Part shown: piece after piece, positions 13,701-24,650 of the stretch
Numbering within the stretch: the first letter of the stretch is position 1
Layout: the number at the start of each line of letters is the position of its first letter
The notes under the pieces: model-generated
What the model saw: only the letters and a program-made list of their open reading frames with translations
The model's database searches: none
What the model was told of the DNA's origin: nothing
NCBI RefSeq assembly: GCF_947568905.1
Contig: NC_079164.1
Coordinates: 107,136,001-107,200,000, forward strand
Reading direction: 5' to 3'
Source: Ostrea edulis
Taxonomy: Eukaryota
Length of the DNA: 64,000 bases
Translations under genes and position numbers: made by a program

Positions 13701-16700
13701 GTTAAAAAATAAAACATTAGTTTATACACTGAAGCAAACAATGCTGACCTTCTGCAGAGAGTATTTCAATTGGATATTCAAATATACTTTAAAGCAAAGT
13801 TTTTTACTCACTATCATGGTCACCCAAAGTAAAATCCCCTTCATAAACTTTATCACTGAAAGAAATATATATACATGTACATCAAACGCTGTCAAACTTT
13901 ACAAGTCTGGTCAATACAGTAAAAAGTGCTAACTTATTAAAACAAGGCTCATGGGCCACAATGCTCACCTGAGTCATAATGACCCGTCTGTTTTTCATTA
14001 GATGATTTTTGAATTTTTTAAAACCCTCTTTATTCCCATGAAAAATTCTGACCCCATCTTACAGGGTCAAGGGTCATGACTCATGATGCCACCAACAAAC
14101 AATGGGCAAATTTTTTTGATCAGAAAAGTTCATGCGAGTCTTTGTCTCAGGTGAGCTAAAAGTATTCTTGAATGCAAAAATAGTACCCACCTAAATGCCA
14201 TGCCCAAAGGGGCCAAGAGATCATTCATGGCCGGGATATTTACCCCGCCTGTGTCTGGCATCCACCACTGTCTACAAACCAAAATTTAATGTTAATGTAC
14301 AAGTGGTAAATCCACTGCAAGAAATACAAAACACCAAAACATGTACAAATATATATACCTTACTTGCCAATTCATAAAAGGAAAAAACAAAACTGCTACA
14401 GAAATATCAATGAAGACATTTAAACAATATATAGACATCTGTCAAGAAAACAATAAATGCATATACAAGAAAATATTAGCAATTCAGATATACTCTATCA
14501 CAAAAATTACTGCTTGTACATATTGTATGGTCATATAAATTTACCTTGTATTTTCATCATAGAACTTGACTTTTCTCATCACTGTGACATTGTACCAGTC
14601 AGCAAAGATGATAACTGACAAACCATTATCGATGTCCCGCTTCAGTTTGGTCACCTCCTCTGGGAAATACTCTTCTTCTGCATCCACAATCAGGAGGGTA
14701 CCATACTGACTGGCATCAAAGCAGGTCAATGGGGAACCTGATGTCAAATGTCCAAAGTTCAGGCAGGAATGATTTCATTTCGCAGATTATGGTGAAAAAT
14801 TGCATTTTCTGTCCCCGATTTTTAATATCACATTAGGATATACATGAACTATCCATAATATTTTCAAAATCCAGTAGCAAAATAAGTTTTCCCATCAAAT
14901 CCTTCTATAATAGTTATACATGTTTCTTAAGCATGCATTTAATAGAATGAAATCAATCAATTTAAAAGGTTCATTCTCACCCATGACTTCGACAAAATAA
15001 CCAGCGGTTCTGAGATGGTGGTACATCTCTTTAAAATTTGTGTGAATATGGTCGCCATTCCTAATAAACAGAAAAGTTCCAGTTCCTTGATACATATGGC
15101 ATAAAATCAAGCATAATACACTTGAAATTGGAAATACATGTATGTTCATTTTTACCTATGTATCATCACTGTATTCTACTTATACAATACTTTCTCATAA
15201 ATTGCAAGGCTACCAGCAATGTGGAATTTAGACTTGTGAACAACTTTGTATAATTGTAGTGTTGAACAAATTTAATGTTCGCGAAAATTATATCTTGTTG
15301 ATAAATGTGACTATGCAAAGTTGCAGAAGTGAAGACTCTTGAGATACATGTGATTTGCATTTAAGTCTAAAGCTTACCAGTCTAAAGGATCATTTTTCAT
15401 CCTGAGGTTGTCTCTGGGGAAGTAGCCCGGTGGATACCTCAGATTGTGGTACTGGTCCCACAACACCCTCTTACTGAATAGGACAATCAAAACCAATGTA
15501 TCAGCTATCAAATCGAAAGTTTGTTTCTTCAAATCAGAAAGGAAAGTTTAAAAGTACTGTACGCGTACACTCTCCATATCATTAAAAATTTCCGATACGA
15601 CATTTCCTTATATTGCTCCTACAAGTAAGAGCCTTGGTTGATGTCCCTACCCTCCTTATAAACCTCAGTATATGCAGTAATTAAAAATGAAAATAAAATG
15701 TAATGAAAATAAAAATATCTATGCATGATAACAGAATAAATGTGTCGCCGCTGAACCTCTAGCTGGCTGGAGTACTCCTTCTTTCAGTATATATTTCTAA
15801 GTATATGTACATATATTACCTTCTAGGAGGAGTTGAAATAATCTGAACTTTAATAGGTAGCTTTAAGATTGTCTGACGTGGAGTTTTTTCTTCGCCCTGA
15901 ACCATTAAACAAAACAGAGCACATTATATTGAAATGAGAACATATGTTTCAAAGTTTTTCTTTCATGTATACCTAAATGAACCACTAATTATTGACAGTC
16001 TACAATGAACTCATAAATTTCCAAGACCTACCTCCGGGGGCGATTCTACAGTCAGGGTGATCTGCCCTTGAGCAATGCCCTCGTATGATGCCCCCAACTT
16101 GGCAACAGAAATGGAGACGGCTAAGTATCCGGACCACGGCCACAGTGTCTTAGAGTAGGAGAACGCCACGTCTATGTAGTTACCATGGTGAGGAATGTAC
16201 GGTTCCCAACGGGGCTACGTGATTGAAGAAAACGATTGTCAAAAGTTTTTTCTTTCTTATAAATTTGATTTAAGCGACATTGAAGTCCATACTTCTCATA
16301 GTCTGACCATTAATGTGCTATTCTGACTCTTACTTTGTCCAAAATTCTCCCTGATACTCCCATTCCATTTAGAATTGTTACCTGAAATATTTCAAAATCT
16401 TGTACAAGGCGATATCAATGCTGTATCATACTGAAGAAACAATGTGAGTTTTTTTATGATAAAAAATACATTAATTTTTAAAATCACTAAAACATAACTG
16501 ATCATATAGGACAAGATTACTGATTAGCTATGTGACTTACATTAATTATGACAGGCATGGCTACGTATTAATTATTAGCTATGTGACTTACGTTAATTAT
16601 GACAGGCATGGCTACGTATTAATTATTAGCTATGTGACTTACATTAATTATGACAGGCATGGCTACGTATTAATTATTAGCTATGTGACTTACGTTAATT

Positions 16701-19700
16701 ATGACAGGCATGGCTACGTATTAATTATTAGCTATGTGACTTACATTAATTATGACAGGCATGGCTACGTATTAATTATTAGCTATGTGACTTACATTAA
16801 TTATGACAGGCATGGCTCCATAGTAGACTGGTTGAGAACAGTATGGCCACATGTACGGACATTCTGTGAGGTCAATGTAACTTGGACTCAAACTAGAACA
16901 AATATACTTTTCAAATTAAATACCAAGTTCAGCTTTTTGAAAACTAAATTTTCTGATATAAACATACTTGTATGATTGAAATGCTGTTTCTTGTACAGTC
17001 ACTGACTTTCAAAAGGTGTTTGACATTGAAATTCACTTTAGTATTTGATTTGGGTAAGCTACAACCATTAATTAGTCACAAGATCTACACAAATCTTCAT
17101 CATTACCTAGCTACAACCATTAATTAGTCACAAGATCTACACAAATCTTCATCATTACCTAGCTACAACCATTAATCAGTCACAAGATCTACACAAATCT
17201 TCATCATTACCTAGCCTGTGGTTTGTAGGTTCTGAGAGTTTGATAAGCTCTGATCAAATCTAGCTTGCCATGACCCTGCTCGAACATATTGACCTCTGGT
17301 AACCTTCTAGCGGAAGCCATGAGAGCCTGCTTCATGCTGGCTGGGTTAATAGTTTTGGCTCTGTCTAACACAGCACTGAAATAAAAGATTTCAATATTCG
17401 ACAACTGTCCTGATTGTATGAGCTAAGAATTTCACACAAAAGAGTGGTATTAAAACATCATAAAACAGGGATAATTCATACGCTTTCCCGTACCTGTACA
17501 GGAGAGTCACAGCACCAGCAACCACAGGGGACGCAACACTGGTTCCAGAAAGGGATCTACAGCCTCCCCTAAATAACAGAGAACCCTTGTAAATTAACAC
17601 ACATTTTGGTTTACTAATCACTCTACAGAATATTTAAATTTTTAAAGAGAAATTCATTTTATATGTACATGTATTAATACAGTTTTTATGTAACTTTAGG
17701 ACTTCATGCTTCCAGACTTACTTGAGGGCTGACCCTCGGACAGCTGATCCGTACGTAACAATGTCTGGTTTTAGTCTTCCATAACCATGAGGAAGCTCCT
17801 AAAAATATTCAGAGCACTATTAAGATTCATTCGCTAGATATTGTTACTTTTTAAAAACTTTTCTATTTAATAAAATGGAAACATAAACTATAAAACAAAT
17901 CTTTTTTTATACCAATTCATTTATAGCCAGTCAACAAATAACAATTTGTATATGCAGAAACATTACCCATGTAGTCATTCCTCTGGAGGAGAACCTGGCA
18001 ATCTGGTTATCAAAGTTGATCCCTCCCACTCCAATAACATCCATCTGGTCTGCCGGGTTGTTCAGTGTCCTTCAAAAGATTAACAGCAAAACAGTCAATC
18101 TTGACAATGCTACCATGAAATTTCCTAAATGCTGGACCACATGTACTTCTGCTTAAACCACAAGACACATGCAGGGGTACAAAGATATAAAAACTTATAC
18201 AGACATTTGTGCAACCCTTGGTAACTTAATTCACCCATACAATACACCATCATTTACAGAAGTCAGTGTAACTCTTGGCAACATGACTCACCCATACAAG
18301 GGACCATCATTCCCAATTGCAGAAATCATGATGACTTTGTTGGCTGTGAGTTCCCAAACCTGAAATGCATGTATCATGATTACTATGTACAACCAACTTC
18401 ATGTATATGTACACAATCTTTCATAATTCCTTACATCATTTCCACTCAACTCTTCAATGACTGACATAGTAAGTCTAAATGTTAAAATGCTGCTGTTATG
18501 TCAACCATTGCATTTGTAAGCCACCACACTATGGAAATAATTGCTTCTGTGACAGCTAAGTATCCATAATATTAAACTCAATGCATAACGATTTTTTTGT
18601 TTAAAGTTTTACGACCCATTAGGAATTTTCACTCTTAAATTTCACAAGCTATAGATGTTTTGCTAGATATCAGATAAGCAATAAGGGTTCTAACACAGAA
18701 CCTGTTTTAAGGTCTGATCTAAAAGACCAGTATCTTGCAGTACTTTCAATGCCGAGCCTTTTGGTGTATGAAGAATTGCTACCTATTTTGATGGCTCAGG
18801 TATACTGCAGACAGGAGTTGACCCTGGGCTCCTCGCACATGAAGCAAGTGCTCTACCAACTGAGCAACATGAAGCAAGTGCTCTACCAACTGAGCAACAT
18901 GAAACAAGTGCTCTACCAAATGAGCAACATGAAGCAAGTGCTCTACCAACTGAGCAACATGAAGCAAGCGCTCTACCAACTGAGCAACAAGAAGCAAGCG
19001 CTCTACCAACTGAGCAACATGAAACAAGTGCTCTACCAACTGAGCAACATGAAGCAAGTGCTCTACCAACTGAGCAACATGAAGCAAGTGCTCTACCAAC
19101 TGAGCAACATGAAGCAAGTGCTATACCAACTGAGCAACATGAAGCAAGTGCTCTACCAACTGAGCAACATGAAGCAAGTGCTCTACCAACTGAGCAACTG
19201 TAATATATGCCTGTGAATATATCTGGATCAATATCTGTATTACAGAATAGTTACCTTGTCAACAAAAGGATGGTCCATGAAGTCTGGTCCCCCAATGCTA
19301 AGATTCAGCACATTGATTTTCTTCAGGATGGCATAATTAAAAGCATCCAGGAACCACGATGTGTAGGATACCTATCAATAACATTCAACAATGTGTAGGA
19401 CATCTATCAATAACATTCAACAATGTGTAGGACATCTATCAATGACATTCAACAATGTGTAGGACATCTATCAATGACATTCAACAATGTGTAGGACATC
19501 TATCAATCACATTCAACAATATGTAGGACATCTATCAATCACATTCAACAATGTGTAGCACATCTATCAATGACATTCAACAATGTGTAGGACATCTATC
19601 AATGACATTCAACAATGGTTCTAGTATGCAGTATGTACTAATTCAGCAATGATATATAACTGCATATACAAATGAATTAGTAGTAAAACATAAAACCATT

Positions 19701-24233: not shown

Positions 24234-24403
24234 GGCTTAAAATCAAAGATTTCATAATCTGAATTCAGGGTCCTCTGTCTCATCCATTGTGCAGAAATTT
24301 CCCTATTCTCCGAACCTAAAACAGAAAGTAATTGTGGTTTGGACAAATCCAATCATGTTTCATGTGAATAAGCACTTGCTCCTCCATCTTAAACTTAGGA
24401 ATC

Positions 24404-24650
24404 CCTCTCCTCAATATAACTGTAAAGTGTTACTGTTAGGCCATTAGATCAACCTCTCCTCAATATAACTGTAAAGTGTTACTGTTAGGCCATTAGATCA
24501 ACCTCTCCTCAATATAACTGTAAAGTGTTACCGTTTGGCCATTAGATCAACCTCTCCTCAATATAACTGTAAAGTGTTACTGTTAGACCATTAGATCACA
24601 CTCTCCTCAATATAACTGTAAAGTGTTACTGTTAGGCCATTAGATCAACT
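24404..24650. repeat. 49-bp minisatellite upstream of the first MBTPS1 coding exon, 5 copies
   Basis: Unit caacctctcctcaatataactgtaaagtgttactgttaggccattagat. Confidence 0.93.

Follow-up and report, generated by a model that had tools for sequence, protein, structure and literature searches.

The gene for site-1 protease, MBTPS1, of the oyster Ostrea edulis carries tandem arrays that have its own splice junctions inside their repeat units. In a window of 64,000 nucleotides (NCBI RefSeq assembly GCF_947568905.1, contig NC_079164.1, positions 107,136,001 to 107,200,000 of the forward strand; all coordinates below count from the first letter of this stretch), exon overlap revealed six arrays and one decayed 57-bp pair that each include a splice junction together with 5-22 exonic nucleotides. 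The arrays are young and lineage-specific, and junction arrays recur at other MBTPS1 junctions in other bivalves. On balance, we read them as locus-specific minisatellites (variable number tandem repeats, VNTRs) that are close to neutral and that arose by small tandem duplications in place. They look like a general quirk of repeat-prone genomes, not a control switch on MBTPS1.

The gene model was built by hand from tblastn mapping of named MBTPS1 proteins and comprises the following region:

10705..24191, minus strand: coding region of MBTPS1 (site-1 protease).

The gene is complete, with its start ATG at 24191 and its stop at 10705, and its 28 coding exons are separated by 27 introns, all of the GT-AG type. 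The protein has 1049 amino acids, of which residues 5-1049 align with Mytilus MBTPS1 at 76-77% identity, and the best named match to the last exon comes from Saccostrea cucullata (83%). The introns are short, with a median of 273 bp that falls to 237 bp when the arrays are collapsed.

Arrays were detected using Tandem Repeats Finder (TRF) and an independent self-comparison scan based on offset identity, and taken together the two methods recovered every array listed in an earlier note made from the sequence of this stretch. That note had held that units of 51, 52, 57, 32, 27, 37 and 66 bp each contain a real splice site plus exonic bases, and this is borne out by the two methods together and by overlap with the modeled exons:

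21642-22422, minus strand: 66-bp array of about 12 copies on the exon 4 donor, with 21 exonic nucleotides and 11 decoys.

20307-20454, minus strand: 37-bp array of 3.9 copies on the exon 7 donor, with 7 exonic nucleotides.

19947-20087, minus strand: 27-bp array of 5.2 copies on the exon 8 donor, with 9 exonic nucleotides and 4 decoys.

19359-19617, minus strand: 32-bp array of 8.1 copies on the exon 9 acceptor, with 13 exonic nucleotides, its last copy being the real site.

18199-18312, minus strand: decayed 57-bp duplicate, 44/57 identical, on the exon 10 donor, with 20 exonic nucleotides.

17057-17215, minus strand: 52-bp array of 3.1 copies on the exon 14 donor, with 5 exonic nucleotides and 2 identical decoys.

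16516-16817, minus strand: 51-bp array of 5.9 copies on the exon 15 donor, with 22 exonic nucleotides and 5 decoys.

The copies within an array are 91-99% alike, and the exonic parts of the units code for residues that are conserved in Mytilus. The 66-bp unit consists of the last 21 nucleotides of exon 4, the donor CTG/GTAAGTACT (here and below the slash marks the exon border) and 45 intron nucleotides, and all 11 of its decoy donors are identical to the real site. The exonic part of the 51-bp unit encodes the conserved peptide AMPVIIN, at an exon join that is free of gaps against Mytilus, and all five decoys there are perfect donors. The 12-mers around the decoys match the authentic site exactly at exons 4, 8, 14 and 15. 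At exons 7 and 10 the decoy donors are slightly weakened (GTAAC versus the authentic GTAAG, and GTGAAT versus the real GTGAGT, respectively), and the decoy acceptors of exon 9 read AG/ATGTCC versus the authentic AG/GTATCC, differing at exon bases +1 to +3. The exon 10 pair is real yet lies under the TRF threshold, having been picked up by the offset-identity scan, and it is an older duplicate. As a side observation, the tail of exon 4 that is copied into the 66-bp array (22402-22422, minus strand) encodes RRSLSL, identical in Mytilus, a sequence that we take to resemble the R-x-x-L sites cleaved by site-1 protease.

We predict that the authentic splice site is the copy nearest the exon (the first one for donors, the last one for acceptors), because the spliced model aligns to Mytilus MBTPS1 with no gap at any of its 27 exon joins, and a gap-free conserved protein is obtained from the exon-proximal sites only. 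The arrays extend into the introns and would leave the protein intact, as had been claimed. Given that the units hold conserved coding bases as well as a splice site, it is the junction that seeded the array and not the reverse. Each unit matches its own array only within the 64-kb window, and units so confined that also contain coding bases of MBTPS1 are not mobile or dispersed elements; an origin from a transposon- or introner-derived repeat was ruled out on these grounds. A rolling-circle origin from a lariat or circular RNA was likewise rejected, since exonic bases are part of the units and the introns greatly exceed them in length. Reading on from any of the donor decoys leads to an in-frame stop 1-12 codons downstream, in agreement with the earlier note.

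Other repeats in or next to the gene do not contain a confirmed junction:

24404-24649, minus strand: 49-bp array of 5 copies, ending 213 nucleotides upstream of the ATG, with a tttacag motif in each unit.

18837-19198, minus strand: 30-bp array of 12 copies with a tRNA-like unit, internal to an intron and starting 57 nucleotides past the exon 9 donor.

13541-13594, minus strand: (TC)27 microsatellite that follows exon 24 from intron base +4 onward, adjoining the junction without containing it.

12379-12677, minus strand: 27/54-bp array ending 18 nucleotides upstream of the exon 26 acceptor and not derived from the junction.

The last two are the further repeats that had been described as abutting splice sites, and they do so. 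The 49-bp array had been thought probably to span a used acceptor; the array itself is real, but the acceptor within it is unconfirmed, and a stronger acceptor-like site lies at 24316/24315. The 30-bp array is the farthest from a splice site among the MBTPS1 arrays with a TRF score of at least 50. Its unit resembles the 5' part of a tRNA (GCTCAGTTGGTAGAGCA), with a T-arm-like sequence downstream, and although ARAGORN called no intact tRNA in it, the array probably arose by amplification of part of a tRNA-derived short interspersed nuclear element. TRF counts 10 arrays within the 13.5 kb of MBTPS1, and the 64-kb window as a whole, at about 35% G+C, has some 25 distinct tandem arrays. TSNAXIP1, in the same window, has only one weak intronic 45-bp duplicate away from any junction, and so lacks junction arrays, as noted before.

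Contigs of the same species from seven short-read runs map to the region at 99.2-99.8% identity. The 27/54-bp array contains the start point of five of these (12420), and a different repeat contains the end point of three (9929). Tandem arrays interrupt short-read assemblies in just this way, and the breaks directly support at least these two repeats as real in several individuals. Copy-number variants sought in other assemblies by way of an array-spanning non-coding open reading frame (ORF) gave no match, and an exact look-up of the exon 7 ORF returned no record. A full-length search seeded with P0019 listed arthropod-like relatives first and contained no oyster transcripts.

MBTPS1 loci of other bivalves were fetched by orthology. 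Two of them (L001 and L003) are short-read contigs from related oysters, and L002 and L012 represent a long-read contig from another bivalve. Both related oysters have intron positions in common with the window, and the arrays at exons 7-15 are absent from them; in Mytilus californianus arrays are likewise absent at the orthologous junctions. The exon 4 junction of L003 nevertheless carries decayed donor repeats of 21-31 bp. Two oyster lineages are thus affected at the exon 4 donor, and their unit lengths differ. The decoys of L003 keep CCCTG/GT as found at the exon end in the window, whereas the exon end of L003 itself reads CATTG. The other bivalve has arrays of its own at other junctions:

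L002/L012: 70-bp unit, 2 copies, exon 17 acceptor.

L002/L012: 125-bp unit, 1.9 copies, exon 17 donor.

L002/L012: 66-bp unit, 3.9 copies, exon 24 acceptor.

L002/L012 (L012 13758-16480): 103/124-bp units, about 22 copies, donor of the fused exon 22/23.

The units on the fused exon are mostly exon sequence, each with a cryptic acceptor-like CCCCTAG. In Mytilus galloprovincialis a 70-bp array of 10 copies sits on one acceptor and is absent in M. californianus, and in Tegillarca granosa a decayed 50-bp array of 7.8 copies lies on the exon 22 donor. The MBTPS1 introns of Tegillarca consist largely of long minisatellites (40 bp x 71, 36 bp x 37 and 28 bp x 18 at L016 736-3556, 7911-9200 and 10137-10657, respectively) and illustrate how repeat-prone bivalve introns are. 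One more candidate locus, L013, was discarded as an unrelated contig with a repeated ORF.

Our preferred reading of near-neutral minisatellites would begin with an in-place tandem duplication of 27-66 bp that by its position happens to straddle an exon-intron junction, after which slippage or unequal exchange would enlarge the array into the intron and not into the exon. Splicing would continue at the copy that is continuous with the exon, and the other copies would become intronic decoys that are either ignored or, when used, give early-stop transcripts cleared by nonsense-mediated decay (NMD). With the decoys ignored or their products removed in this way, the protein would be unchanged and the arrays nearly neutral, and they would be tolerated much as the VNTR in intron 7 of human F7 is. 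Wholly exonic duplications would be purged by selection, whereas those crossing a junction would be rescued by splicing, and the abundance of such arrays here would follow from the many minisatellites that bivalve genomes generate and from the short introns of MBTPS1. Measurements on 12 arrays place the junction at 10% to 78% of the unit length, and with the L003 repeat added nine arrays are of the donor and four of the acceptor type. This variable position and the involvement of both kinds of site are as expected for untargeted duplications, and they argue against a process keyed to splice-site nucleotides.

To obtain a chance expectation, each array was collapsed to one unit and a duplication of the same length was placed uniformly in place, counting duplications that cross exactly one junction, given that they are not wholly exonic. 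For the MBTPS1 unit lengths, the junction-straddling share under this null is 16-35% per array. The earlier statement that junctions make up a small share of intron length is thus wrong for MBTPS1, since they take up this much of the viable positions. Several points weigh against the preferred reading in its purest form, that of chance acting on short introns. In the oyster gene, 6 of 8 arrays straddle junctions versus about 1.8 expected (P=0.002), or 7 of 9 with the 57-bp pair added (P=7e-4), figures that represent a real excess but are post hoc, because the gene was chosen for the pattern in a genome with notes on 792 windows, among which chance may yield a few extremes of this kind. Under the same null, 4 of 12 arrays in the L002/L012 gene straddle junctions versus 0.7 expected (P=0.003). 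The two Mytilus genes show no excess, and the size of the effect differs between lineages. In addition, the short-read contigs support the junction arrays by analogy only, and the silence of the decoys is a prediction. Short introns alone do not account for the excess in two species. This roughly 3-6-fold excess probably reflects a higher birth rate or a longer life of duplications at exon edges, and it points to an exon-edge bias. It does not look like the work of a mechanism that reads the splice site itself.

The excess over the uniform null in two species is also what would be expected if exon edges truly attracted small tandem duplications as mutational hot spots in the bivalve germline, the arrays being the signature of this process and not chance survivors. 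Candidate causes are breaks or stalled forks associated with transcription or splicing, and template switching at the boundary between conserved exon homology and intron haplotypes that have diverged strongly. The recurrence at the exon 4 donor in two oyster lineages and the contrast in array load between MBTPS1 and TSNAXIP1 point in the same direction. We nevertheless rate this account as rather unlikely, given that the position of the junction varies among units, that donors and acceptors are both affected, that the two Mytilus species lack the excess, that the oyster test is post hoc and that the mechanism is only a candidate one. Put more broadly, the suggestion that exon-intron borders are duplication hot spots in bivalve germlines and give rise to clade-wide "junction VNTRs" by a DNA-level process at the exon edge is one that we regard as a tentative possibility. 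Such VNTRs would make introns longer, add series of spare splice sites and supply the starting point for new alternative ones. The process may be misaligned repair at the limit of exon homology between strongly diverged haplotypes, or a stalling event coupled to transcription or splicing. The duplication coupled to splice sites that had been proposed for this locus is possible in this sense, the excess being present both in the oyster and in an independently chosen bivalve ortholog, but a duplication keyed to the splice site itself is disfavored by the anatomy of the units.

Selection on RNA processing would offer a different explanation, in which rows of U1-binding donors promote splicing at the upstream site or keep AT-rich introns from being polyadenylated prematurely, with copy number tuning expression in general. 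The many decoys that keep a perfect donor, such as those at exons 4 and 15, would fit such a role, as would the association of repeat number in intron 7 of F7 with F7 expression, but their high identity is explained by youth, the decoys of the 37-bp and 57-bp repeats have weakening changes, and the arrays are not conserved between species. The acceptor-type arrays and the mostly exonic units in other bivalves also misfit a model based on U1 sites, and we regard this role as improbable. Less probable still is the proposal of the earlier note, a tunable poison-splicing rheostat specific to MBTPS1 in which regulated use of decoys, followed by NMD, cuts the output of the SREBP- and ATF6-activating protease. 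Seven junctions are affected in this one gene and each decoy donor leads to an early stop, but such stops are the default in any AT-rich intron and do not discriminate. Known unproductive-splicing switches are conserved across related species, whereas the MBTPS1 arrays are lineage-specific, being absent at the orthologous junctions of L001, L003 and M. californianus, and other bivalves carry theirs at different MBTPS1 junctions. The premature stop expected of regulated unproductive splicing is present and the conservation is not, which leaves the proposal unsupported, and the arrays seem uninformative about the control of SREBP/ATF6 in particular. An assembly artefact has the least to recommend it and is barely credible; tandem repeats are error-prone in assemblies, but short-read contigs from several individuals break at the edges of two repeats, arrays of this kind are present in four independent assemblies from other bivalves, and an artefact would not put arrays in register with splice junctions.

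Elsewhere in the window, TRAPPC8 (Trs85; 614-4255, minus strand) lies downstream of MBTPS1 on the same strand. The same order is found in Tegillarca granosa (L016 17624-21741), and the MBTPS1-TRAPPC8 gene order is conserved between the oyster and this ark clam. Near 26 kb, GC skew changes sign. Arrays of one 29-bp unit (26587-26906 and 28723-30264) lie on either side of a pair of LINE-like (long interspersed nuclear element-like) reverse-transcriptase ORFs (26865-27551 and 27530-28348, plus strand). A plus-strand gene at 31-43 kb, whose exon ends were placed by reading the sequence, has no Pfam match, and its last intron contains about 104 copies of a 15-bp unit (CATGTGTAGTATTGA) at 40714-42250, with a GC skew of +0.42. 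An open frame of 341 amino acids at 46239-47261 (minus strand) encodes a tyrosinase central domain (Pfam PF00264, E=6.6e-25). Arrays with donor-like motifs at 40099, 42876, 45102 and 6242 were considered as further junction arrays and rejected, as they are not at junctions of placeable exons. The one at 40099-40309 (plus strand; 30 bp x 7) has a TTG/GTGAGT donor in every unit but sits 135 nucleotides inside an intron of the plus-strand gene, and its sequence is unrelated to the nearby real donor at 39964. The repeat at 42876-42962 (plus strand; 29 bp x 3), with TTG/GTAAT in each unit, is in the 3' untranslated region, starting 27 nucleotides past the stop of the same gene. The array at 45102 lies between that stop and the tyrosinase ORF, and the array at 6242 between MBTPS1 and TRAPPC8.

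One gene thus has seven junction arrays, and four other bivalve MBTPS1 genes have arrays of their own. If the junction excess holds genome-wide, it would amount to an undescribed mutational bias at exon edges and a route for intron growth and for the birth of alternative splice sites, and it would be a hazard in practice when molluscan genes are annotated. In addition, the arrays provide natural experiments in which the spliceosome has to select one donor from as many as 12 identical ones, or from about 22 in the case of another bivalve. Full-text literature searches returned no report of many junction arrays in one gene or genome, the VNTR in intron 7 of human F7 being the sole described example found, and a paper on a minisatellite of the mouse pseudoautosomal region does not describe junction-seeded arrays.

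Several known systems resemble the MBTPS1 arrays in part. NAGNAG tandem acceptors are 3 nucleotides apart and give in-frame isoforms; as in MBTPS1, duplicated splice motifs adjoin the authentic site, but the MBTPS1 units measure 27-66 bp and lead to stops. Poison exons, as in the autoregulation of SR protein genes, are deeply conserved elements that have been shown to be used and regulated. The likeness is that use of an alternative site would bring a premature stop and NMD, whereas the MBTPS1 arrays are young and non-conserved and their decoys are only putative sites. Internal gene duplication and intron gain were reportedly treated by Gao and Lynch in 2009. Intron gain through tandem duplication is the subject of the Rogers model, and a potato RdRp (RNA-dependent RNA polymerase) gene is a case of it (PMC4974935). 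Cases of this type share with MBTPS1 small intragenic tandem duplications that include splice signals and that splicing renders harmless, but they create a new intron from duplicated exon sequence, whereas in MBTPS1 the exon structure stays as it was, an intron already present becomes longer and the duplicate has multiplied into an array.

The closest parallel is F7. In the 37-bp VNTR of its intervening sequence 7 (IVS7), the first unit spans the exon border, and the identical pseudo-donors are silent because splicing selects the most upstream site (Borensztajn et al. 2006, PMC1557585). F7 differs in being a single locus in one gene, whereas MBTPS1 has seven affected junctions with unrelated units, one array of the acceptor type and up to 11 decoys; the choice of site in MBTPS1 is predicted from sequence, and the bivalve pattern recurs across lineages, with about 21 decoys in another bivalve. 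What the two have in common is an intronic minisatellite whose border-spanning first unit supplies the authentic donor, followed by pseudo-donors. As in IVS7 of F7, the arrays of MBTPS1 run head-to-tail in introns with their terminal unit crossing the exon border, and each further unit carries a pseudo splice site that resembles the authentic one.

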